Shown: one piece after another, positions 21,065 through 62,225 of the stretch
How the letters are laid out: each line of letters opens with the position of its first letter
Position numbering within the stretch: position 1 is the stretch's first letter
Assembly (NCBI GenBank): GCA_965644295.1
Contig: CBFFRP010000432.1
Coordinates: 248,001-312,000 of the forward strand
Direction of reading: 5' to 3'
Length of the DNA: 64,000 nucleotides
Source: Paraphysomonas bandaiensis
Lineage: Eukaryota > Protista > Chrysophyceae
Translations under genes and position numbers: made by a program
Notes under the pieces: model-generated
The model's input: the letters and a program-made list of their open reading frames with translations, nothing else
The model's database searches: none
Told to the model about the DNA's origin: nothing

Positions 21065-21142
21065 GACTGGATGGCCGAGTGGTCTAAGGCGCCAGTTTAA
21101 GGCACTGGTCTTCGGGCGTGGGTTCGAATCCCACTTCAGTCA
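21065..21142 (+). tRNA. trnL-AAG: tRNA-Leu(AAG)
   Basis: Acceptor GACTGGA/TTCAGTC, A-box TGGCCGAGTGG, anticodon arm CCAGT-TTAAGGC-ACTGG, B-box GGTTCGAATCC, T-run terminator downstream. Confidence 0.96.
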
Positions 21143-21203: not shown

Positions 21204-21281
21204 TGACTGAAGTGGGATTCGAACCCACGCCCGAAGACCAGTGCCTTAAACTGGCGCCTTAGACCACTCGGCCATCCAGTC
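21204..21281 (-). tRNA. trnL-AAG: tRNA-Leu(AAG), identical convergent copy
   Basis: Exact reverse complement of 21065-21142. Its own T5 terminator reads AAAAA at 21195-21199 on +. Confidence 0.96.
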
Positions 21282-29248: not shown

Positions 29249-32200
29249 TGTTGAGTTCTGCAATATGATGTGATATATATTGTGCAATTGAAGTGAGTTA
29301 ACAGTGTGCAATAGGTAAAGTCAACTCATAGGTGTAACGGGTGATTATAGTTACAAAGGAATTAAATTCAGTTACTGATGTGTGACTATACAAGATATAG
29401 AACTGACTGATGAACATATGATAAACAGGTGTTGCTGGGAACAGATGTTTCAACATATGTTACACGAATATGTAGTGAAGTGTTCAGAATAATAATTATA
29501 ATTTCTTACTTGAAAGTGCATTGTGTTCAACAGCAAGGTTACGGTCTACGTGTAGAGCAAAGTTAACTTCAGTGAAATGTCCAATGTTAACATGGTAGCG
29601 AGTGGTAGCTCTGATGAGGCGATGGAGGACAGCAAGGTGCTGAAGTTTGACAAGTAAACGACACGTGTGTTGTAACGATTCGGGAGGCATGTGAACATGA
29701 CGCAGATGTGTTGGAGGGTGTCAGCCGATACATGGAGGCGACTACCAGACGATGATCCGAATAAGGAGGTTTTGTCCAATCATATGCTTCAAACGCTTGT
29801 GGATAGGTCTAGGAGTGAGTTGGGAGTAGTACTCCAAAAGACTACAGCGAAATACCAGCTTGTAAATATTGGTTAATGATATTGTCGAAATAGAGATTGA
29901 TAGGCTGAAATGTATTTTCTACTAAAACTGCCTTCTACACTGAGTAGAGCAGCAGAGCAGTGCAGCTGTTCATAGTTAACGAGCAGGAGTGCTGAACATA
30001 CACATGAACAGAGACAGAGACAGAGTTCATCGGCGGAATGGTGCTAATATGAAGATGATGATGTCTCATCTGGAGGGGAGTCCAATATGATAGATGGTGA
30101 AGTGCTTATGCCTGAAACAGTAGACCAACGAGTGTATCTAGGCAGTTGTGCCGGAAAGCAGCTATTCATGGTTAAAGATCATAGAGTGCTAGAGAAATAT
30201 TATGAAGCAGATCCAGGAGTCATATCTCTGACGTAGAAGGGGTCAGCAATAATGGAGACTCAAGGAGTAGGAAGCTTTCAACACTGGCAAAAGAGAAGGC
30301 ATCAAAGTATGTGAAGATGCGGTGAAGAATATTGTCTCAGGCGGAATGCTGCGGGCACTGGTGTGTGGATTGGAACTACTTAGAGTACCGAGAATTGTAG
30401 AGTTAAACACTGGTAGAGAGGTGCTGGCTGGAGACTATGATGAGCATGGAGGAATGCCATGGGAGGCACTATATAATATTATGACGTTTTGAATTTGCCT
30501 ATTATTACGTCATCATGCCATCATGTAATGGAGGAAAATGCCAAGGAGGACAGTAAAGTTAGTGGATGTTGCCTTATGAGTGTGTTCCTGGGAGGAAAGG
30601 TGCCCGAGTTATCCTGGTTGAGGAAATGGGGGTGCAAGGCGTATGTATTAGTCCCGAAGGCCGATAGACGGAAAGTCTGGGAGGAAAAGGCACAAACAGG
30701 ATATTTTGTGGGTTTCCCAGATGAGCAGATGGGGTATCAAGTGTTGATAGGAGATACAATAGTCACGTCTGTTCATGTCCTGTTTGCCCTAGAGATCGGC
30801 TGATTACTACCGAGAAATGGACTATAAGCCACGGTGGCAGTGGTTCCTCAGGGAGGAGTGTTATCGACAAAACCCATATGAAGATGGCGGCCAACTGTAC
30901 AACAAGACCACGCGAATATAGATTCGGAAAGAGGTCTAACTGTGGGATATAGATCCCTGATGTCAGGTGGTGAGGAGCAACTGGAAGTTAAGACTCCTAT
31001 TCACATCATCGCGGATGAGTGAAGACCTTGTGACAAGAGTATCTGCTAGTTCTGGATCTCGTGACGACGGGACCAGCGGACATTTATTACAGCAGTTGAC
31101 TGGGACGGTTCCATCCCCTTCTGACTTCGTAAGTGCTCCGGGAGAGGAAGCTCCATCAGATCGCTCAACTAGGGGCAGGCGCACAAGGGCTCCAAGGGTG
31201 GTGACGAATGTGTCAGTAGTAGGGGAGAAGCACGTATTACCTTCGTGTGACGAAGTGGAGTGCAGCCTACTAGAGGAGGCAGATTCCATCTGGTGCTCGT
31301 CAGCGGGACCTAAGGTGCCTCAGACATATTCCGAATCCTTGGAGTTGCCGGAACGGAAGCAATGGAGTTCAGCCAGGCTGAATGTGACGAACTGGAACGA
31401 AGGGAAGTAATGGAAGTTAAGCCCATACCTACCCCAGTGTCACTCCATTGACAGCAAGACAGGCTGAGCGTGACAGACTGGAACGAAGGGAAGTAATGGA
31501 AGTTAAGCCCATCATCCCTACCCCAGTGTCACTGCAATTTGAATCCTGAGTATGTCTTTGCTTTGAAACGCACCAAGGAGGGTGCGATTCCACGATAGAA
31601 AGCAAGACTTGTGGTACTTGGATGCGGAGGCCATGAGGTTGGTAGAGCCAACAATTATACTCCAGTGGTAAAAGCGGTAACAGTAAGATTGTTATTAGCT
31701 ATCGCGTTAGTTATGAATATGGTGGTGCATCAACTCGACGTATCTAATGCATTCTTGTATATGCAGATATAAAAGGAGATGTGTGTATAAGTATGCAACA
31801 CCAGATTTCAAATTGCCACCAGGATATTGCTTTAAACTGAAGAAAAGTTTATATGGTCTTCGAAGCTCACCACGGTCATGATGATAATATGCTGAGAGCA
31901 TGTCGAGATACGAATATTATTTTGGAAATTAAGCGACGAGTATGTGAAAGGTTCGATATTACAGATATGAATGAGATTGGCTAGTTTTTGAACGTGAGAG
32001 TGACGAGAACTCCGAATTGTCTCAAACTTGACATGACAGTGTTCATCAAAAAGATATTGGTGAAGTATGTGGATTTTCTAGGTGTCCAAGGGACAAGACG
32101 CGGCGATACCCACTACATAGTGATGTCATGGATAGGATCAAAGTGGGAGTGGAACATGTGCATTCGACTGAAGAGCAGGAATTAGTTGACAATTTTCCCT

Positions 32201-33411
32201 ATCGTCCACTAATAGGAGCGTTACTTTATTTATCTATGAATACAAGGCCGGATATCTCATATGCAGTGGGAGTATTGTCACGATTCTCAACGAAAGTTAA
32301 TATCACTGTATGTAAGCTCATGATGTATTTAATGCAGTATGTACGAGGTACTACAGATAAAGGCATTCATTATAGAGGGAGAGATTTTGATCTTCATATG
32401 TTCACTGATGCTGACTGGGCAGGCGATCCGTTGACGAGGAGGTCGACTTCAGGATATAGTATGTTGAGCTGGTGGACCACTATCGTGGGGTTCTAAACTT
32501 CAGTCTACTGTAGCTACATCGACTATGAAAGCAGAGTATCAATGCTTATATAACGGATTACAGGAAATGATATGGTCTCGGGGGGTGACTAGAGAAGTAG
32601 GGTTGAAAATTGACGAGCCCACACCATTATTCCTGGATAGTCAAAGTGCTCAGGATATATCGGAAAATCCAGTGCAACATCAACGATCGAAACATATTGA
32701 GATTAAGTATCATATGATTAGAGAGCACGTGGATCCCGAACAGTTTAATACAGCGAAATTACTTCATGTAAGCAGTCGACAACAGATGGCTGATATATAT
32801 ACCAAGGCTTTGTGTGGTCCAATATTCATTGAACAGAGGGAGCGAAATCTTGGGGAAAATTTTAAGACTACTGCACAAATTATCGCAGAGGTACCCAAGG
32901 TAAAGAGAGTTCGTCGTAACTAGTTAGAGGTGAATGAATGGTGGGAGCTAGCTATACCAGCGGAGTCATACGTCCACCAGTGTCCTATGAGGTTCGGTGG
33001 TTGCGTATCCGATAGCAATGTTCTTCACAAATTTTAGAATGATTAACTACATCCAATTGAGTGGGAGTGTTGAGTTCTGCAATATGATGTGATATATATT
33101 GTGCAATTGAAGTGAGTTAACAGTGTGCAATAGGTAAAGTCAACTCATAGGTGTAACGGGTGATTATAGTTACAAAGGAATTAAATTCAGTTACTGATGT
33201 GTGACTATACAAGATATAGAACTGACTGATGAACATATGATAAACAGGTGTTGCTGGGAACAGATGTTTCAACATATGTTACACGAATATGTAGTGAAGT
33301 GTTCAGAATAATAATTATAATTTCTTACTTGAAAGTGCATTGTGTTCAACAGCAAGGTTACGGTCTACGTGTAGAGCAAAGTTAACTTCAGTGAAATGTC
33401 CAATGTTAACA
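29249..33411 (+). mobile_element. Ty1/Copia LTR retrotransposon, non-autonomous (coding region decayed), 5-bp TSD TTGCA
   Basis: 344-bp LTRs at 29249-29592 and 33068-33411 (TG...CA). PBS TGGTAGCGAG at 29593, PPT ATTGAGTGGGAG. Remnants in PR-IN-RT-RH order: VYLGSCA, WGCKAYV...GYFVGF, QLDVSNAFLY, KKSLYGL, TRPDISYAV, DADWAGD, KHIEIKYH, ADIYTKAL. Confidence 0.97.
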
Positions 33412-33431: not shown

Positions 33432-33788
33432 TGTTAAAATTGGATATTTCACTGAAGTTAAATTTGCTCTACACGTAAACCTTGGTCTTGCTTTCTTAAC
33501 CACAGTGAGGTTCAATATCAAGTAAAAAACCATACTTAATAATATAAACACTTCCCTGCATATTCATGTAACATCTGGTGAACATCTGTTCACAGCAACA
33601 TCTGGTTTCTGGTTCTCTTGTGTTCACCAGTCATTCCTATGTCTTATATCGTCACACATCAGTTGCTGAATTTAAATTCTTTGTAACTATAATCACCCGT
33701 TACACCTATGAGTTGACTTCACCTATTGCCCACTATTAACTCACTTCGATTGCACAACATATATCGCATCATACTGGAGAACTCAACG
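33432..33788 (-). mobile_element. Diverged solo LTR of the same Copia family, inverted, TSD AAACA
   Basis: Reverse complement aligns end to end with the 344-bp LTR, with the terminal TG changed to CG. AAACA at 33427-33431 and 33789-33793. Confidence 0.93.
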
Positions 33789-43359: not shown

Positions 43360-44740
43360 GTGAATATCTTATTAGCAATAGGCTTTTAAGAGTCCATGCT
43401 TAACTCTGGTATCCTAACCGCAAGCACCATGGTGCAACCACTTTCGCTCTATCACTCAAATCAAACGCAGTGAGCAAGCAGAATGTTGATATACCTGACA
43501 TCTATCATTCCAGAGTGCGCTTGACTCTATTCGTTTTTGATTATGCTGTCATTGGTTCTTATACGAAATTTATATTGTTATATATTATGACTTCAGGATG
43601 TTTGAGTCCTTAAGGTAATAAGCAGCCAGGCCGCATGACTTCAGCAGACAGCCCAATCCCCCGGATGCCGTTGAGGTGGGATCATTCCCGGATGTCTGAT
43701 TATTCGTCAAGGACCAAAGATGTCTACACAAGCAATGAGTGGGCGGAACGATATCTGCTGACTATATATGCGGCTCACGTTCGTTTCCTAGAGAATTATA
43801 TCGTATAGTTATATAATATATGACTGTGTATGTGTATGAGCACCGCAGCAGATGAAACGCATTGGTAAGAGTTTGATGCCTGATCCAACTGATGTCTGAT
43901 GTTATAGATTGGTATAGTATAAGTACTGTTGCTGATATGCTTGCTGTCGTGGTGATTAGTTTACGCGGAGATAAACAAGCATACCAGCATTTGTGATTCG
44001 TAATATCGTATTCTCATATAGCTGCATTTGCCTCTCTTGAGATTGCAAACGCTCCAACCGAATAGCCTGATTTTGGATACATATTGAATACGCATATAAC
44101 TATCTTCACCACTACTACTTACATATAGTATTAGTACCTATGCTCGGAGACGACGCGGCAACAGCCGTTGGGGACACATTAATTGAAGGTGGAGGATCAC
44201 AAACAGGCTCTGGTATTACCTCGACTTGTAGGGAATTACACTATTATACAGGAGCGCATATATACTCTGATATCCCTCAACAAAGTCGGACTCGCACCTT
44301 TTCGTGGTGTTCTGGGGGATAAGTACCGGAGAGATTCTCTCTGGGAAACTAACGTGAGCAGCATATATATAGTCAGCAGATATTCTTTTGCCCACTCATA
44401 GCCGAATGCTTGTGTGGTAAAAGGGACACCAATAAGTGTCACTTGTGTAGACGTCTTTGGGCCCTGACGAATAAACAGACATCCGGGAATGGGCCCACCT
44501 GAAGGGTAACCGGGGTATTGGGATGTTCACCTTAAGAACTCAGAGCGTAAGTGGTCGCACATTGGTGCTTGCGGCGACGCACAAGCAGCTTCCGTAGCGT
44601 TAAATAGTAGGATAAAAAAGTGTGCACTGATTAGTTACAGGTAGAGGTCTAACTAGCTTGTCTAGCATTCATCATTCATCTAGCTACTAAGTTGGTGCAG
44701 GTTTTTAACGCCTATTGCTGATAATAAGACTTTCAATACA
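43360..44740. repeat. Two diverged copies of a dispersed repeat family in inverted orientation (arms ~43360-43800 and ~44335-44740)
   Basis: For example CCGCAAGCACCATGGTGCAACCACTTTCGCTCT (~43418) vs the reverse complement of 44542-44575, and CATTCCCGGATGTCTGATTATTCGTCA...GTCTACACAAG vs the reverse complement of 44442-44492. Confidence 0.85.
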
Positions 44741-50777: not shown

Positions 50778-53700
50778 ATGCTGCGTGCGTGGAGGTTCAG
50801 TCAAACAAGCTGGAAGCTTCAGCGGGCTGTCCAGGTACATCACAGCCCTACACATACGATATCGACACAACACACCCTATATAAGCCGTATATATGCAAT
50901 AGAAGTACCTATTAATTGTCGTATGGATGAACTGTGTATACTGTACATATGTTGCTGTGTTTGTGACATTGTGATGATCAGGCTAGAAGTATACACTGCT
51001 CAGTTGCACTTGAATTTGGTCGTAAAGATGGAGCCAGTGGATTCATTCAGTCACCCAGAGACTTTTCAAAGAAACAGAAGAAAAGATGGCGTCAGAAGAT
51101 GGCACTGAGAGAGGAGCGAAGCAAACATGATCCGATGCGAAAGATGAAAGAGGGTGCTATCGAAAAGCAAATGCAATCGCCAGAAACTAAGGAGTTTATT
51201 GACCAAGCGAGTGATGGGTACGTGCACAGTATATAAAAGAATGAGCATGTCTCCAGTTTTATCGAATTTGAAATTACTCATCATATTTTCAATGTGCAGC
51301 ATGTTGGCAGGCATACGCGAACTCATGCTTCCCGATGGACTACAGAATATTTTGCAGGACATAGAGGACTATGAGCGAAATACTGATGAACTTTTTTCGA
51401 CCCCCATTGAGTTGGAAGATGTGGCAAGTCGACTTGTTGAACAGTTTCAACTTTTAGAGAAGAATCCAGGTCTACACCCATCTGATGCTATCACATTGAC
51501 GTCAGTGAATGCTGAGGAAGCGAACAAGGCGCTGGTGATGGCAGCTGATCGGGGGAGTCGCCGGTATGTGGAAGCTGTGATGCCACTAGTTCATGCGGTT
51601 GGACTACAGATTGAAGCATCGACTTTGACTTCCATGGTAACCAGCTTTACTAATTTGGGCATGTACGATGCAGCTGAAAAGGTATTTGAGCGGTCCATCG
51701 ACTGTGATGCTGATCCCACGGAAGATTCCTGGGCGGCTCTAATTGAAGCGAAGTGTCGACGAGGTGACATTGAAGACGCCCAAGAGACAATGAAACGACT
51801 GCGAAAATTAGGTGTTGAGCCTACCTCTCGCATGTATATTGCTATCCTTCGCGCCATGGTATCTGCGAATCAGAATGACGAGGCGTTCGAGTATTGGATG
51901 ACAATGAAGGAATATGGTGTCGATCTAAATGTGGAAGCGTACAATACTATGATACAGCAGTGTATACAGACCTACCAAACCGAGCGAGCCTTCCTCTATG
52001 TCGATGAAATGCGTGGGCCGGGGAGAGAGTTGACTCCAACTGCTGAAACCTTTGCCAAGCTTTTCGAGGCCTGTGCATACGCGCCAATGTGGGTTAATGG
52101 ATATCAAGATATCGTGTTTGAAGCTATGGCTAAGATGGAGGGCACTGAATTGGTGCCTACTACTGAGGTTTATAATAGTATAATATTTGCCTTCGGCTAC
52201 GCTGGGGACGCGCAAGCTGCGGAATATTATTTCTGGGAAATGAGAGACAAGGGAATTCCACAGACTCTCTCCACCTATAACAACATGTTTCAAGCCCTGG
52301 GAAAGTAAGTGTCAGTTTGACAATGTTCCTAAGTATTCTGTTATGCGAGAAATTTATTTGAGTTCTGATTGCCATAATCTAATATATCTCGATTCAGTGC
52401 ACAGCGTGTGGGCAAAGGGGCATATATGATAAAACCTCGTTGGGTTCGTCCACCTGAAAAAGAGCCGACTGAGATGCACCGATTGATGCTTGATGCCGGT
52501 GCAGTGAAGACTGCCGAATTGAGTGAGTAACATGATGTTGATAAACTGCTTTGCTTGTGCAAAATACGTGTTGTGTGTGAAATAATAGTTGATGTGCATT
52601 TAGTATCCGAAATGTATGATTATGAAGATCCTCCTGACCGAGGTAAACGACCCAAGGGACGACTTCTCTCTCCTGAGGCAGAGGAAAATGAGCAGGAGAT
52701 CCAGGAGGAACTGATAGAAGCTCTCCGCTTGGAAACCACAGGCAAAAAAAGCCGATACCAGATGCTTCAAGAGCGAGACAAAGTTCGCAAAGAAGTATAT
52801 CTCAATGAGACTGGCCGAAAAATTTCTCTCTCCCTGTTGGCTGAAGGTGTCGATCCTGGTCCTGGAAAGGTGGTGCATATCACGCCGGATTTGATCGAGG
52901 ATGAGGACAACTATGAAGATTCGATGAACGATTACCTTGGCACGGGTGGTGACGACACATCTGGTGGCGGAATGAGTAAGGCTATGCAAGAGGCAATGGG
53001 TATGAATGGAGAAGAGAGCGTGAATGAAGGTGAGGATGGATTATTCGATATAGATGACGATGATCCGGAGTTGGCCAAATTTATGGACGCCATCAAGGGA
53101 CGGGGACACACGACAAGCTTTGATGATTTGTTGAAGAGTATGTCTTCTGAGCTAGATGGCGATGAAGATGAAGTTGAGGAGGGCGACTCAACACGGAAGC
53201 TCCACGATATATTAGGTGCTGTGCGTGATTCTGTGATAATTATGTCGTACATATTGTAACGCTTATGTATACTAGGCCAAGGACAGAATGAGAATGATCC
53301 TGCCAAAAAACTTGATGAAAAAATATCTCTTAGCCCCAAAAAGCAGAAACAGTTCGATCAACTATTCAACGATGTATTGAACGACCGTCTGGATTTGGAT
53401 AGCATCAATCCCGCTGAGGTCGAAAAATTTGAACAGGAGAGTAGCGCAGCTGAGGAAGGACATGAGGATATATACGATCGCGTGAAGCGCGAAAGAGAGT
53501 TAGAAGAGCTCGAGGCTGAAGCGTCAACTAAAAAGGCGAATGTCCATGGGAACCCAGTCTTGTCACTTGTTGACAATGAGGAAGTCGACTGGTCGAAGCT
53601 GTCGCCCGATGAGGAGAAAGAAAGTGTAAAACAGGAGATTGTGCCCGTAACTGATAACGACGAGGGTGCTATTCCGATGAGTGAAGTTAATCGACAGTGG

Positions 53701-54321: not shown

Positions 54322-54824
54322 GCATTGAATTTATGACGAAATAATAAAGATTTACGTGTAAATTGAAGTGTACATAGCAGTTGTGTAACGATATACGTCA
54401 CCTGCGGTATTAGGAGTATTTGCGCACCGAAATTTGGCTAATGGTATGTGAGGGATAGGAACTTTTTCTGAAACTGAAGGATAAAAATATTTGACATATG
54501 TTTTAGCCTCGATATAGTGATATATACATCTCTAAGGCAATACATGTATAGAGCAATGTTGAGCGAGCGATACATTAAAACCAGAAAAAAACATCGAAGA
54601 ACACGCTTTCTCTACCTTTTCTGGTATTTATGTACATGGGCTTATATTTTTCATCGTACAATTAGGTGCTTTCGGTATATATTATTATATATATATACTA
54701 CTAGTGTATTGATTTACAATACATGTCAATTCAATATATTATTCCCTGCTACAACGGCTTACTACCTTGATATTTGCATTAGCGGTATGCAGTAAGTGAC
54801 TACCGAATATTAATATATGAAATT

Positions 54825-55345
54825 ATACAGTCAGCAGATAATTTTCTCTCCACTTTTGCCAAATCCTTGTGTAGCACAATATGGACACTAATATATAAGT
54901 GCCACTTGTGTAGACGTCTTTGGGCCTTGAGGAATAAACAGGTATCCGGGAATAGGAAGTCGAGGTAATACCAAAACCTGGTAAAGCAATTTCACCAGGT
55001 TTCATATATAAGTATTGAGTTATTATTTTACTGTAATTTGTATCTGAGAGGTTAAAGATAAAGAAAAAGTCGCAAGTATAGTTGTTATTAGCAGTATTTA
55101 TTGCGTTAAAAGTTGGCCCTGCTATTATTACTTGTGTTTTGTAATATCATATTCTCATATAGCTACACCTGCTTCGCTTGAGACTGCAAACGCTCCAACC
55201 GAATAGCCTGATTTCGGATACATTGCATACGCATATAGCCATCTTTACCACTACTACTTACAGTAGTATTAGTACCTATGCTCGGAAACGACGCGGCAAC
55301 AGCCGCTGGGGGCACATTGCTAGTAGGTGGAGGATCATAAGCAGG
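54825..55345. repeat. Dispersed repeat family copy (pieces homologous to 44370-44490 and 44010-44205)
   Basis: Shared AGTCAGCAGATA...CACTTGTGTAGACGTCTTTGGGCC and CTTGAGA(C/T)TGCAAACGCTCCAACCGAATAGCCTGATTT...TAGTACCTATGCTCGGA. Confidence 0.85.
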
Positions 55346-55360
55346 TGAAGGATCATAAGC

Positions 55361-55977
55361 AGTTAGTACAGTGTATAGTAACAACGCACAACAATAATCA
55401 GAACAATACCGCATATATACGACATACGACCCCGTCACCATCTTTATGAACAGTATTACTTACCCTGCTCGTGCGCTTTCGTGGTATCTCTTCCTCCGCC
55501 TCCGGGTCGTCGTTGGATATGTCGCCACGAATGTTGACAACATTCTTCTTCCCGTTGCACTTCTCCTACACCATAATATGTACACAGTTAGTGCAGTGTA
55601 TAGTAACAACGCACAACAATAATCAGAACAATACCGCATATATACGACATACGACCCCGTCACCATCTTTATGAACAGTATTACTTACCCTGCTCGTGCA
55701 CTTTCGTGGTATCTCTTCCTCCGCCTCCGGGTCGTCGTTGGATATGTCGCCACGAATGTTGACAACATTCTTCTTCCCGTTGCACTTCTCCTACACCATA
55801 ATATGTACACAGTTAGTGCAGTGTATAGTAACAACGCACAACAATAATCAGAACAATACCGCATATATACGACATACGACCCCGTCACCATCTTTATGAG
55901 CAGTATTGCTTACCCTGCTCGTGCACTTTCGTGGTATCTCTTCCTCCGCCTCCGGGTCGTCGTTGGATATGTCGCCA
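55361..55977. repeat. 225-bp tandem repeat, ~2.7 copies
   Basis: Near-identical units. ORF pairs 55460/55685 and 55471/55696 are offset by 225. Confidence 0.95.
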
Positions 55978-55980
55978 TGT

Positions 55981-56837
55981 CTGAGAGTGGTATCAGCTCT
56001 GCAGCAATCTGATGTATGTGTACGTGTCTGTCTGTCTGTCTGTGTGCTCAGGAGGTGTGATCCACACAACAATGAACACCTCATCCGATAAACCACACCT
56101 CCTGAGCACTCCTCACTGTCATCAACAATGTCACCATATTAACATCAGAAGATACTAACTCAGAAGATACATGCATCACTCTATATGTATGCATGTGTAT
56201 GGTGTGTTAAGTTATGCATATATATATATTATTGTCATGATGTGCGTGTTGTAAGCACTGCTCGTGCAGTGTGGTTGCGGTGTAGTATGATGGGTTCAAT
56301 GTTCAGGTGGGCTCAAAGCAGGGGGAATAGGAAGTGTTCTAACGTGCACAATCAAACGATGTTATAATGTTTCGTCTGCTTGTACTTGTTGGACCTCTCT
56401 ACACGAGTCCACACTCCTCAATCCACTGTATGAGGCTCTGTGCTACAGCCTCGTGACCAAACACTGTCATGAAGACCTTCCTGGAAGGCAGTTATAAGCC
56501 TGCAACTCTGAACCACATAGTAAGAAGTGTCATCTGAGAGTGGTGTGACCTCTGCAGCATTCGGAGGTGTGTGTATGTATGTGTGTGTCTGTCTGTGTGC
56601 TCAGGAGGTGTGATCCACACAACAATGAACACCTCATCCGATAAACCACACCTCCTGAGCACTCCTCACTGTCATCAACAATGTCACCATCTAAGCACCA
56701 GAAGATACTGACTCAGAAGATCCATCCCTCTATATGTATGTATGTGTGTGTGTGTGTGTTAAGTTATGCATATGTATTATGGTCAAGATGTGCGTGTTGT
56801 AGTCACTGCTCGTGCAGTGTGGTTGCGGTGTAGTGTG
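55981..56837. repeat. ~305-bp direct duplication (55981-56290 and 56534-56837), each with a 16-bp perfect hairpin
   Basis: Both copies start CTGAGAGTGG, contain GTGCTCAGGAGGTGTG-N34-CACACCTCCTGAGCAC and end CACTGCTCGTGCAGTGTGGTTGCGGTGTAGT. Confidence 0.9.
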
Positions 56838-57181
56838 ATGCACACCGCGTCCTCACCACACACTCATGACGCGTGTTCGACGCTCTTGTGGGGCGTTTTT
56901 GGTCAAATTCAAATTTTTTTTGTACGTGTTTTTCTATATGTTATGCTGCGCCGTGCTCGATCTGGGCGCACATGCATGTCTAGATGTGTCCGGTGCGAGG
57001 AACATATTTTGAAATGCATGCACTTCATCTCCATGTGCAGTTAGTTTCTATCACATCAACACCATATCAATAGTAGCATGTGATGTGATGTGATGTGATG
57101 TCATCTGGGACACACAAAAAGGTACGACGACACGAACCTGTCTGCCATGAATGTCTGTTATGCTTGATTACATGTACGTAC

Positions 57182-57986
57182 GTATATATAATGGTTGCGG
57201 AAGGAAACCTGTGACTTCAACTCGCCTCAATAGCGGTGGCGACTGCTATTGGGACAGTGTCGTCATGAAAAGATGTGACCTTCCCAACCTTCATATGTTA
57301 TACTTGTTTGTTCGGTCACCTGTGATATCCACTCGTGTCAGTAGCGGTGGCGACTGCTATTGGCGCAGGGTTGTCATGAAAAGATGTCGACAGAACTTAC
57401 TTGTATGTTATACTGTATATATAATGGTTGCGGAAGGAAACCTGTGACTTCAACTCGCCTCAATAGCGGTGGCGACTGCTATTGGGACAGTGTCGTCATG
57501 AAAAGATGTGACCTTCCCAACCTTCATATGTTATACTTGTTTGTTCGGTCACCTGTGATATCCACTCGTGTCAGTAGCGGTGGCGACTGCTATTGGCGCA
57601 GGGTTGTCATGAAAAGATGTCGACAGAACTTACTTGTATGTTATACTGTATATATAATGGTTGCGGAAGGAAACCTGTGACTTCAACTCGCCTCAATAGC
57701 GGTGGCGACTGCTATTGGGACAGTGTCGTCATGAAAAGATGTGACCTTCCCAACCTTCATATGTTATACTTGTTTGTTCGGTCACCTGTGATATCCACTC
57801 GTGTCAGTAGCGGTGGCGACTGCTATTGGCGCAGGGTTGTCATGAAAAGATGTCGACAGAACTTACTTGTATGTTATACTGTATATATAATGGTTGCGGA
57901 AGGAAACCTGTGACTTCAACTCGCCTCAATAGCGGTGGCGACTGCTATTGGGACAGTGTCGTCATGAAAAGATGTGACCTTCCCAA
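57182..57986 (+). repeat. 233-bp tandem array (111+122 bp A/B dimer), ~3.5 copies, seven hairpin monomers
   Basis: Identical 233-bp units. Monomers share CCTGTGA...TAGCGGTGGCGACTGCTATTGG...GTCATGAAAAGATGT. Confidence 0.95.
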
Positions 57987-58169
57987 TCTGCACGTGTTGC
58001 ATCCGTGTATTCTGTGCCCATGGTCTTTTGCTTGCAGTAAAATACATATCTATTATAAATATACATTAACTATTGAAATATATTGTACAGATATATTTAC
58101 TATTAGCATGAAAGAACCAGTGCCATGTTGAAGACCTTTATGTCCGCCTGCTGCATGCATTATGTGGTA

Positions 58170-61100
58170 AGAGTGAGATGGTATAGTGTATATAGTTAGA
58201 TGGTATAGGGATGTATAGTGAGATAGTATAGTGGCATATATTGAGATGGTATAGTGGTATATATTGATATGGTATAGTGGTATATAGTGATATGGTATAG
58301 TGGTATATTGTGAGATGGTATAGTGGTATATTGTGATATGGTATAGTGGTATATTGTGAGATGGTATAGTGGTATATTGTGAGATGGTATAGTGGTATAT
58401 AGTGATATGGTATAGTGTTATATAGTGAGATGGTATAGTGGTATATAGTGGGATGGTATCTGCGTGTATTGTGAGATGGTACAATGGTTGTATAGTGAGA
58501 TGGTATAGTGTATATAGTTAGATGGTATATGGGTGAATCGTAATATGGTATAGTGGCATATGGTGAGATGGTATAGTGATATGGTATAGTAGTGGTATAT
58601 AGTGAGATGGTATAGTGGTATATAGTGAGATGGTATAGTGGTGAATAGTAATATGGTGTAGGGATGTATAGTGAGATGGTATATTAGCATAGTTAGATGG
58701 CATAGTGATATATAGTTAGATGGTATAGTGCTATAATATAGTGAGATGGTATAGTGATGTATAGTGAGATAGTATAGTGACATATGGTGAGATGGTATAG
58801 TGGTATATAGTGAGATGGTATAGTGGTATATAGTTGGATGGTATCTGGGTATATAGTGAGATGGTACAGTGGTTGTATAGTGAGATGGTATAGTGGTATA
58901 TTGTGAGATGGTATAGTGGTATATTGTGAGATGGTATAGTGGTATATAGTGATATGGTATAGTGTTATATAGTGAGATGGTATAGTGGTATATAGTGAGA
59001 TGGTACAGTGGTTGTATAGTGCGATGGTACAGTGGTTGTATAGTGAGATGGTATAGTGTATATAGTTAGATGGTATATGGGTGAATCGTAATATGGTATA
59101 GTGGCATATGGTGAGATGGTATAGTGATATGGTATAGTAGTGGTATATAGTGAGATGGTATAGTGGTATATAGTGGGATGGTATAGTGGTGAATAGTAAT
59201 ATGGTGTAGGGATGTATAGTGAGATGGTATATTAGCATAGTTAGATGGCATAGTGATATAATATAGTGAGATGGTATAGTGATGTATAGTGAGATAGTAT
59301 AGTGACATATGGTGAGATGGTATAGTGGTATATAGTGAGATGGTATAGTGGTATATAGTGGGATGGTATCTGGGTGTATAGTGAGATGGTACAGTGGTTG
59401 TATAGTGAGATGGTATCTGGATGTATAGTGAGATGGTATAGTGACATATGGTGAGATGGTATCGTGGTATATAGTGAGATGGTATAGTGGGATGGTATCT
59501 GGGTGTGTAGTGATATGGTACAGTGGTTGTATAGTGAGATGGTGTAGTGGTATATAGTGAGATGGTATATTAGCATAGTTAGATGGCATAGTGATATATA
59601 GTTAGATGGTATAGTGGTATAATATAGTGAGATAGTATAGTGGCATATGGTGAGATGGTATAGTGATATATAGTGATATGGTATAGTAGTGGTATATAGT
59701 GAGATGGTATAGTGGTATATAGTGAGATGGTATAGTGGTATATAGTGGGATGGTATAGTGGTGAATAGTAATATGGTATCTGGATGTATAGTGAGATGGT
59801 ATATTAGCATAGTTAGATGGCATAGTGATATATAGTTAGATGGTGCAGTGGTTGTATAGTGAGATGGTATAGTGGTATATAGTGAGATAGTATAGTGGTA
59901 TATAGTGAGATGGTATAGTGATGTATAGTGAGATGGTATAGTGGTATAATATAGTGATGTATAGTGAGGTAGTATATGGGTGTATAGTGAAATATAAAAG
60001 AATATCTGATTATTACATGAGAACGGTTGCGTACAGAAACTAGTTTTACATCTATAGAATAACTAATAACTCGACTTACTATATACTACTATTAGCGGGC
60101 TACCGTCTCGGGACTGCTTGTGCATCGCTGCGAGCACCATGGTTCAACCGTCCCTTGCAGTGAGGTTAATCGGGGGGTCTGCCTTTGGGCAGTGTGTCTG
60201 CCGGGCCTGTATCGTGAGTTTTACGGGGGATGGTTGGGGCTAGATGTATATGAGAGTGTAAGTCGGTGGTGTAGATGGTGCTCGTTGTCGAGGTGGGATT
60301 TCGACCACAAGTAAGGAGGAGTTGTTTCCGGAGTGGTGGTGCTTGTCTCTGTCGGGTTCGGACTCTTGCAGCGGATAGAATTCTTGGGGTGGATGTCGCT
60401 AGGAGTAGTTGGAGTATTTTTGGTGTCGGGTGAGTATCCTGCGACGGGCGTTGCTGTGAGTGTGGTGGGGTCGTAATCGGTGTTACTGATGCCGTGTCTG
60501 TGTTGTGATGTCTGAGACCTCTGTTTCGAAGCATGCGGAGCCCTCCACCATATAGGGGAAGGAGGATAGAGGTTACGGATTTTTCGAGAACGTGGAACTG
60601 ATGTTCGAGCAGTGAGCTGGATATGTGGCGTCCGAATGCGTCGGTCAATTGTGTGGCAGTAATGTGGCCGGTCCAGTAGCGCTCAGCCTGGGGTGTGTGT
60701 GGATTCCATGCGGCTTTTGCTAGTTTGATTATGGCGGTGTGGAACCAGGGATGGGGGAGCGTGCGTGTGCGAAGTTTGTCGAACTTGTGGTGTGCTTGGT
60801 GAACATCTTCACGTATGTGAGTGAGGTCGGGGTGTGTGCAGGTGAGAAGCATGTGTGCCATGTTGTCGATTGGGAGTGCACAGTCTGCGCATGCTGAGGC
60901 CGTTGTTATGTGATCAGGCCCGGTTTTCCCTTTGGCTTGATTTCTGCCCATCGCGTATGATTTGTCCCATACGTAGGTGTATAGTGAAATGGTATATGGG
61001 TGTATAGTGAGATAGTGTAGTGATGTATAGTTAGGTGGTATAGTGGTATACAGTAGATGGTATAGTGGTATAATATAGTGGGATGGTATAGTGATGCATA

Positions 61101-61362
61101 GTAATATGGTATGGGTGTATAGTGAGATGGTATATGGGTGTATAGTGAGATGGTATATGGGTGTATAGTGAGATAGTGTAGTGATGTATAGTTAGGTGGT
61201 ATAGTGGCATACAGTAGATGGTATAGTGGTATAATATAGTGGGATGGTATAGTGATGCATAGTAATATGGTATGGGTGTATAGTGAGATGGTATATGGGT
61301 GTATAGTGAGATGGTATGTGGGTGTATTCTGAGATGGTGTAGTGGTGTTTAGTGAGATGGTT
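58170..61362. repeat. Degenerate satellite built from ATAGTGAGATGGT / ATAGTGGTAT monomers with higher-order repeats
   Basis: ~22-23-bp basic period, C almost absent on +. Diagnostic variants recur at 548 bp (GGGTGAATCGTAAT near 58531 and 59079) and 161 bp (61000/61161). Confidence 0.95.
59994..60975 (-). mobile_element. 5'-truncated non-LTR retrotransposon (LINE) 3' end, 15-bp TSD GGTGTATAGTGAAAT
   Basis: Open ORF 60166-60975 with CCHC finger CADC...HMLLTC, ending GRPPD*. TSD at 59979-59993 and 60976-60990. Confidence 0.9.
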
Positions 61363-61544
61363 ATAGTTCATACTTGTGAACTGTATGTAATATATATGTG
61401 TAGTCGGTGACTTTTATTGCTGTAAAACTGAAGTAATATGGAAGAAATTAGTAAAAAATATTATAAATAATACTCTTCACACTGTTATTAACTTCATAGT
61501 TACTTATTGTGCATAGTTATACCCTTTTCCGACCATCACCAAAA

Positions 61545-62225
61545 ATTTCACCAGGTTTTACATCAAAACCCAGGTTTTGGTATTACCTCGACTTAGGCCC
61601 ACCACAAGGGCATCCGTGGATCCGGGGTATTAGACTACCTGCTGAAGTCAAACATCCGGGCATTACACTTTTAGGAATCAAACTCCTGAAGTCGGCAGGT
61701 GTCGGGTATATATCAAAATTCTGCTTGCTCACTGCGTTTGATTTGAGTGATAGACGCAAGTGGGTGCACCTTAGTGCTTGCGGTGACACATGAGTAGATT
61801 TATTAGCGTTCAATAGTGCCTATTGCTAATAATAAGCCATTCACAACGATAGACTGAAACTATTACAACACAAAGTGCCCCATTCCGACAGTGTGTTCAT
61901 GGTATGGGCTCGCTAGTACACCCATCTACCCTTATACCAACGTAGCTGACAGCACAGCTCTCGTGCAAATTCTGTTGCCGCTCCACACGTGTTCACCTTC
62001 GCTATGCATGACTTATACATGTAATTGGCGCGGATTCTAACAAAGCCATGATGTTCAACTTACCAGTAGTGAATGTCTTGTTTTCTAATAGGCGTCTAAG
62101 AGTCGTTCATCTTTCCATCACCAAACAAAGATTACGCGGAGCTTCTTGTAATCATGCATGACACAGTATAGGCCTATAGCACAGCTTTGGCTGAGATTCT
62201 CCTCCCCCAGAATGCACCGGGATTT
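61545..62225. repeat. Dispersed repeat family copy (inverted relative to 43325-43680; direct to 44995-45150)
   Basis: CTGCTTGCTCACTGCGTTTGATTTGAGTGATAGA at ~61721 is the exact reverse complement of ~43448-43481. Shares GGTATTACCTCGACTT with 44213 and 54957 (reverse complement). Confidence 0.85.

Follow-up and report, generated by a model that had tools for sequence, protein, structure and literature searches.

Does a tandem repeat inside a mobile element encode RNA hairpins whose pairing has been retained, or does it only imitate them? The question is raised by a locus of the chrysophyte Paraphysomonas bandaiensis, lying at positions 57182-57986 of a 64,000-nucleotide (nt) stretch (hereafter the window; contig CBFFRP010000432.1, positions 248,001 to 312,000 of the forward strand, NCBI GenBank assembly GCA_965644295.1). 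A 233-bp unit is repeated there head to tail, and each complete unit can fold into two hairpins, A and B. A first inspection, made from the letters alone (the sequence-only reading), had proposed seven strand-specific, covarying hairpins forming a polycistronic structured RNA locus or, alternatively, a single-stranded DNA (ssDNA) signal. Based on folding, simulations, database searches and read contigs, we favor, with about even confidence, a non-coding hairpin module that is carried by a transposon and transcribed, that has retained its pairing as + strand RNA, and that is plausibly a source of hairpin RNA or small RNA.

Results

Anatomy of the 233-bp array

Tandem Repeats Finder (TRF) delimits an array with a period of 233, 3.45 copies (3.5 in its own report), 100% matches and a score of 1610, and an independent repeat search (families D6 and D9) agrees with it. 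The unit consists of monomer A (57182-57298, 117 nt) followed by monomer B (57299-57414, 116 nt); the two are 83% alike and share a gapless conserved core of 79 nt, which differs at 18 of its 79 positions and is bordered by indel-rich flanks. The parts of the array, in window coordinates as throughout, are the following.

57182..57986, + strand: tandem array of the A+B unit (TRF and repeat search)
57211..57266, + strand: hairpin A (56 nt), first copy, from the RNA fold; identical copies at 57444-57499, 57677-57732 and 57910-57965
57322..57377, + strand: hairpin B (56 nt), first copy, a 24-pair stem with six G.U pairs; identical copies at 57555-57610 and 57788-57843
57267..57321, + strand: spacer S1 (hairpin A to B), which begins with GAAAAGATGT and holds the 3' half of the outer stem of A and the 5' half of that of B
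57378..57443, + strand: spacer S2 (hairpin B to the next A), which begins with GAAAAGATGT

Both 56-nt hairpins have a GGCG loop, and GAAAAGATGT directly follows every hairpin, as the sequence-only reading had observed. A 22-mer from the hairpin top, common to A and B, occurs exactly seven times in the window, always on the + strand, with 0 occurrences expected by chance. The A/B dimer and the placement of its GGCG hairpins, also described in that reading, are borne out by TRF, alignment and folding alike. Its count of seven hairpins is correct as a count of locations but not of independent observations: since the 233-bp units are identical, the seven hairpins represent two independent sequences. 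The array may well be a young, homogenised tandem repeat whose unit comprises two old copies of one module of ~116 nt, an interpretation for and against which the chances seem to us balanced.

Folding on the two strands

Folds were compared with shuffled controls (z-scores), using RNA parameters on both strands and DNA parameters on the + strand. As RNA, hairpin B reaches -30.6 kcal/mol on the + strand (z -5.75) versus -10.4 kcal/mol on the - strand (z -0.34), while hairpin A reaches -23.8 kcal/mol (z -4.1) and -19.1 kcal/mol (z -3.7), respectively; the whole A module has z = -5.0 on + and - alike. For the whole 233-nt unit, the values are -87.8 kcal/mol (z -6.1) on the + strand and -61.1 kcal/mol (z -2.4) on the - strand. 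The + strand RNA hairpins are thus far better than shuffles, and the strand specificity claimed earlier holds for B but not for A, which scores a z of about -4 on both strands. With DNA parameters, the + strand of hairpin A gives -10.1 kcal/mol (z -2.6) and that of hairpin B -7.9 kcal/mol (z -1.2), the latter not distinguishable from shuffles; if the hairpin matters at all, this favors RNA over ssDNA and speaks against the ssDNA alternative of the sequence-only reading. With stems of 24 pairs in B and 21 in A, the + strand RNAs are imperfect hairpins of at least 21 bp, as in microRNA-like (miRNA-like) or hairpin RNA (hpRNA) precursors. The B stem has three bulges, plus a wobble within the stretch in which both arms have changed.

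Joint change of the two arms

Hairpins A and B differ at 10 of 56 positions, and all ten differences fall at paired positions of the minimum-energy fold of B. Four pairs are altered on both sides from A to B (9/48, A-U to C-G; 16/43, C-G to G-C; 6/51, U.C to A-U; 15/44, C.A to U.G), and the other two differences are one-sided and keep the pair (5/52 and 20/39); the second and third of the double changes had been pointed out from the sequence. Four or more double-hit pairs among ten randomly placed differences would arise with P = 0.0003 in the fold of B. RNAalifold on A and B returns 22 consensus pairs, with two compensatory changes, two one-sided compatible changes and none broken. We also used a register-free simulation, in which A was mutated with five random transitions and five random transversions and then refolded: the + strand of the mutants averages -14.9 +/- 3.8 kcal/mol versus -30.6 for the real B (P = 0.0008), and the same simulation on the - strand gives P = 0.75.

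The stems also hold an excess of G.U pairs. The minimum-energy fold of B has six G.U pairs, no A.C and no mismatch, the seventh G.U counted earlier requiring another register; A, placed in the register of B, has three G.U, one C.A and one U.C. As three G.U pairs are common to A and B, the independent events come to ~6 G.U, 1 A.C and 1 transversion mismatch, for which a hand calculation from the pair counts gives P of about 0.02-0.07, if, on any one strand, G.T is expected to make up between a third and 40% of the mismatches in a neutral stem (the upper value takes into account that the + strand is 56% G+T). The earlier argument that a skew from A.C to G.U reflects selection on one strand was overstated: B has six G.U pairs rather than seven, and the skew is borderline.

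Since the arms changed together and G.U pairs were tolerated during the divergence of A and B, pairing was most likely kept at the level of the + strand RNA. That pairing was kept, or improved, while the two monomers diverged is what remains of the original covariation claim, which was overstated for a sample of two sequences.

The outer stems are of a different character. The duplex of S2 with S1 reaches -34.8 kcal/mol on the + strand (z -4.3) and -30.8 kcal/mol on the - strand (z about -4), and S1 and S2 are not only homologous when compared in direct orientation (z 5.7) but mutually complementary over their length as well (z 4.4). Outer stems thus exist, as had been suggested, but their sequences are not completely different between the monomers, the spacers being homologous.

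Copy number and presence in an RNA library

Sequencing runs were examined as assembled contigs, which hold no strand, end, level or small-RNA information. Four of them bear on the unit.

Run X8, DNA: unit contig at depth 126 (263-nt cycle contig, no differences); single-copy genes at ~3.1, giving ~41 units
Run X10, DNA: unit at depth 82, no differences; single-copy genes at ~3.5, giving ~24 units
Run X9, RNA, with three spliced joints of PPR genes: unit at depth 239 (263-nt = 233+30 cycle contig); PPR messenger RNA (mRNA) at 238
Run X14, polyA metatranscriptome: unit at depth 0; a neighboring spliced mRNA at 16

The unit is present at 24-41 times single copy in the DNA runs, so the 3.45 units of this locus are only a small part of those in the genome; the right junction contig (57961 onwards) has a depth of 33 in X8. 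The unit is present in the RNA library X9, where single-copy intergenic sequence and the array flanks (54389-54786, 56976-57174 and 57772-58150) are at 0-1.5. Carry-over of DNA at 24-41 units would leave 6-10x on these flanks, and the unit signal of X9 is therefore best read as RNA. This much supports the proposal of a polycistronic structured RNA; its discrete products and + strand origin were overstated. The absence from X14 could mean that the RNA is non-polyadenylated, that it is not made there or that the strain differs.

A transposon-internal tandem repeat

The array lies inside a 6,638-bp insertion (54957-61594) bounded by perfect 25-bp inverted repeats, a setting that the sequence-only reading had overlooked.

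54957..54981, + strand: left 25-bp terminal inverted repeat (TIR), a perfect inverted match to 61570-61594
61570..61594, - strand: right 25-bp TIR, a perfect inverted match to 54957-54981
54954..54956 and 61595-61597, no strand: AGG, a probable 3-bp target-site duplication (TSD), from joining of the flanks

Removal of the insertion together with one AGG restores an uninterrupted host repeat, as found at 44420-44530, and the loose-end consensus of read contigs past 54953 also shows the host repeat uninterrupted. The array, placed between TIRs in a TSD-flanked element, is thus a transposon-internal tandem repeat. The array is separated from the left end by 2,225 bp and from the right end by 3,608 bp, and so is not the transposon subterminal repeat that the sequence-only reading had named as a finding that would speak against it; nor were spliced coding exons, another such finding, seen around it, the flanks having no open reading frame (ORF) of at least 100 codons and the RNA contigs no joint across the array. 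The nearby ORFs that were scanned with Pfam include no transposase in this copy. A placement of the array within a transposase intron was considered and rejected, as the flanks hold no ORF of at least 100 codons, the scanned nearby ORFs have no Pfam match and there is no spliced joint.

A third terminus of the same family (44203-44227, 3 mismatches) adjoins a stretch homologous to 55132-55345. Because the terminus stands directly beside this homologue, the whole part between 55345 and 61570 is missing from short derivatives of the element.

Coding, known-RNA and ribozyme readings

The array is non-coding. One + frame is open for 106-111 codons and reads SGGDCYW in A as in B, which lie 111 nt apart and hence in the same frame. 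Codon differences between A and B in this frame are 3 synonymous versus 8 non-synonymous, as compared with 2/10 and 2/8 in the other two frames. A Pfam scan of the 106-codon + ORF gave no family at E <= 1 beyond noise, a word-indexed search of 5.8 billion proteins found no homologue of the + frame ORF, and an exact-product look-up of the ORF was blank. Against 1.84 billion representatives, phmmer gave three hits, of which the two retrieved are repeat-built proteins; the best hit overlies a tRNA-like tandem repeat (377 bp) in the assembly of an unrelated eukaryote, a repeat without DNA similarity to the 233-bp unit.

At gathering thresholds, Rfam 15 finds nothing at the array, its only matches in the whole window being two tRNA-Leu genes at 21 kb. 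At E <= 10 on 57100-58060, the sole match is the plant miRNA model MIR7526, at 22 bits against a 110-bit threshold, which is chance; the hairpins match no known RNA family at either level, in agreement with the sequence-only reading. The + strand of the unit is without RTGATGA, TGATG or CTGA, and the - strand has one CTGA and no C box. No hammerhead core (CTGANGA) was found on either strand, nor any ribozyme family in Rfam at E <= 10.

Relatives and surroundings

No relatives of the unit were found elsewhere in the window with the 22-mer at 3 mismatches, blastn at word size 7, nhmmer or an unfiltered covariance model; none were found in JGI (Joint Genome Institute) metagenome contigs with two patterns, or in IMG/VR with one pattern. 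The interior of the insertion holds the following further features.

55360-56034: 225-bp tandem array, 2.7-3 copies
56044-56109 and 56597-56662, both strands: 553-bp duplication with perfect 16-bp stems and a 34-nt loop, z about -5.4 on each strand alike
58164-59990 and 60976-61367: G+T-rich 23-bp satellite with a GC skew of 0.82, flanking the 261-codon ORF
60166-60951, - strand: 261-codon ORF without Pfam match, containing a C-x2-C-x8-H-x4-C motif

The 225-bp repeat has no fold signal, and hairpin formation is therefore not general to the repeats of this region; contigs from each of the two RNA runs cover its left part (55168-55492). The C-x2-C-x8-H-x4-C motif may be akin to the C-terminal zinc knuckle of a non-LTR (long terminal repeat) retrotransposon ORF2.

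Several other mobile or repeated sequences were seen in the window. The host repeat cut by the 6,638-bp insertion is very abundant, at ~600 times single copy for 54787-54985 by contig depth. Another copy of this host repeat, with inverted ends of ~85 bp (43648-43732 and 44442-44526), extends over 43648-44526, and a short relative of the 6.6-kb element, with its terminus at 44203-44227, is nested in it or adjacent to it. Identical 300-bp direct repeats at 29249-29548 and 33068-33367, 3.8 kb apart and with inverted relatives at 33609-33787, look like the LTRs of a young retroelement. The two tRNA-Leu(AAG) genes stand head to head at 21065-21142 (+) and 21204-21281 (-), in an 87-nt inverted repeat of 98% identity. 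On the left side of the insertion, one or more PPR-repeat genes (51.2-54.3 kb) have GT..AG introns at 52305-52397, 52523-52603 and 53213-53272, with spliced contigs in two RNA runs; introns of the neighboring PPR genes are 60-93 bp long and GT..AG.

Discussion

The most serious rival, which we regard as a substantial possibility though somewhat short of an even one, is a neutral palindromic minisatellite: a foldback-like segment, or one resembling a miniature inverted-repeat transposable element (MITE), would have been duplicated to A+B and amplified by slippage or unequal exchange, DNA-level template switching or hairpin-templated repair would have kept its arms complementary, and its RNA would be incidental transposon or read-through transcription. 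The 100% identity of the units indicates recent amplification, as this explanation expects, within a TIR-bounded insertion packed with 225-bp, 553-bp and 23-bp tandem repeats, and no strand preference is seen in the folding of the outer stems or of monomer A, which is the behavior of a DNA palindrome. The five to six non-Watson-Crick pairs among the 24 of each stem are, on a rough estimate, about what neutral decay would give at the divergence of A and B, and no conservation outside the species was found in the JGI metagenomes or IMG/VR. Moreover, template switching in replication is documented both to build and restore stems and to bias the frequencies of pairs, and it can create and repair hairpins in the absence of selection (PMC8794818). 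What a neutral minisatellite accounts for less readily is that the non-Watson-Crick pairs are almost all G.T on one strand, that the three bulges of B and the wobble in its co-changed stretch do not look like a fresh templated copy, and that the test for retained structure reaches significance only with RNA energies and only on the + strand. The lack of a fold signal in the neighboring 225-bp repeat and the mRNA-like depth of the unit in an RNA run with empty flanks also argue against it.

The remaining rivals fit the data less well. A novel array of guide-type small nucleolar RNAs (snoRNAs), for instance a one-hairpin RNA of H/ACA-like type whose stem is followed by an AGA/ANANNA box, appears improbable. 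AAAAGA, which fits ANANNA and contains AGA, does stand 1 nt after each hairpin; were positions 6-17 and 42-51 open, the distance from loop top to box would by our own count be about 15-16 nt, the canonical H/ACA spacing being 14-16 nt, and the differences between A and B cluster in the middle region of the hairpin. The would-be guide pocket is, however, base-paired, and both of its sides co-vary so as to keep the pairing, unlike a guide pocket; the hinge between hairpins measures 55-66 nt, the only ACA lies 12 nt past hairpin B within the outer stem, the + strand lacks C/D boxes and no snoRNA family is found in Rfam at E <= 10. Known snoRNA arrays resemble this one in being satellite-like arrays of small structured units, and the same absence of C/D boxes, paired H/ACA-type pocket and lack of an Rfam match set them apart from it. 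An ssDNA signal, in which a rolling-circle (HUH) transposase or replicon would use the hairpins of one DNA strand for recognition or as origins, is very improbable. Imperfect one-strand palindromes in a mobile element and the strand asymmetry of B are what it would predict, but DNA parameters leave B insignificant and A weak, the asymmetry comes from G.T pairs, a poor kind of pair in DNA, and no Rep, helicase or HUH family was detected among the nearby ORFs scanned against Pfam, a scan that did not include shorter ORFs. TIRs and a short duplication are marks of cut-and-paste rather than rolling-circle elements, and this element has TIRs and a 3-bp duplication; the array is also 2.2 kb and 3.6 kb from its ends instead of terminal, as a Helitron/HUH end signal requires. 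Scarcely credible, finally, is a protein-coding remnant in which an OTU-like or other cysteine-protease motif (SGGDCYW) is repeated in frame in A and B. It would explain the shared heptapeptide, the open + frame of 106-111 codons and the frame-keeping spacing, but no Pfam or word-search match is real and neither are the phmmer hits retrieved, the 3 synonymous versus 8 non-synonymous differences carry no signature of purifying selection, and a period of 233 bp puts each successive unit out of frame. The OTU reading thus fails; the sequence-only reading, which had noted the SGGDCYW frame and its three synonymous differences, had rightly doubted it.

Several observations nonetheless weigh against a module kept for its + strand RNA. 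Only two independent sequences are available, the unit contigs being identical across four runs without a variant, and the search for more copies in the window, the JGI metagenomes and IMG/VR yielded none. In the own fold of A, just two pairs are double-hit (P = 0.10), a lower count that arises because B uses a slightly shifted register, and the reverse simulation, from B to A, gives P = 0.054. The G.U excess is suggestive, and borderline once the common pairs and the G+T-rich + strand are allowed for, and the outer stems, working on either strand, are as compatible with a DNA palindrome as with an RNA structure. The RNA evidence consists of a single contig from a single run whose RNA nature is a guess, and the polyA metatranscriptome that holds the neighboring mRNA at 16 has no array. 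The array is also set among other tandem repeats and retroelement debris, and stem repair by template switching applies here as well.

We nevertheless infer that pairing was retained by selection rather than by a mutational mechanism. According to our favored reading of a transposon-borne hairpin module, the ~116-nt module would be transcribed and its + strand RNA would fold into a 56-nt hairpin with a stem of 22-24 bp and a GGCG loop, extended by the outer stem of the spacers. The working form may be a non-polyadenylated multi-hairpin transcript of the element, whose hairpins could serve as double-stranded RNA substrates for a Dicer-type enzyme and so give rise to repeat- or transposon-directed small RNAs; alternatively, the hairpins might act in cis on the RNA of the element itself. 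Which strand is transcribed, and whether small RNAs are processed from it, are here matters of inference. A bolder version, that the array is a polycistronic precursor of Dicer-made small RNAs (a miRNA-like cluster), borne by a transposon in a marine, stramenopile-type lineage without established canonical miRNAs and part of a wider class of two-hairpin arrays on the DNA transposons of this genome, strikes us as rather unlikely.

Among known systems, two invite comparison. Satellites derived from MITEs or foldback elements reportedly arise inside DNA transposons, for example Tetris in Drosophila virilis. The present array resembles such transposon-born satellites in being a head-to-tail array with a period of a few hundred bp, enclosed in an element that has TIRs and a flanking TSD, in having more units genome-wide than at the locus and in the high homogeneity of its copies. 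It differs from them in that its unit joins two old modules, in which the hairpin arms have changed together and tolerate G.U on one strand, and in its presence in an RNA library; satellites inside transposons are not known to be defined by such RNA-type signatures. With hpRNA and transposon-derived miRNA-like loci, including the polycistronic clusters of animals and plants, the array shares imperfect hairpins of 22-24 bp with wobbles, small bulges and a basal stem, a spacing of ~115 nt on one strand and the transposon context. The hallmarks of those loci are small-RNA reads, Dicer dependence, a duplex with 3' overhangs and a target, whereas this array is known from sequence and contigs. In the related diatom Phaeodactylum, canonical miRNAs are not detectable and about half of the small RNAs come from repeats (PMC4247016). 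By analogy, a repeat-directed small-RNA role would fit this picture, and a true miRNA cluster would be new here.

If the hairpins are not made into small RNAs, the locus would be an ordinary transposon-internal minisatellite, and the lesson would be that palindromic repeats mimic RNA covariation when independent copies are few. If they are, a DNA transposon with a hairpin-RNA array of its own would be at hand in a protist lineage that has received little study, which would bear on the origin of transposon silencing triggers and of later miRNA-like genes.

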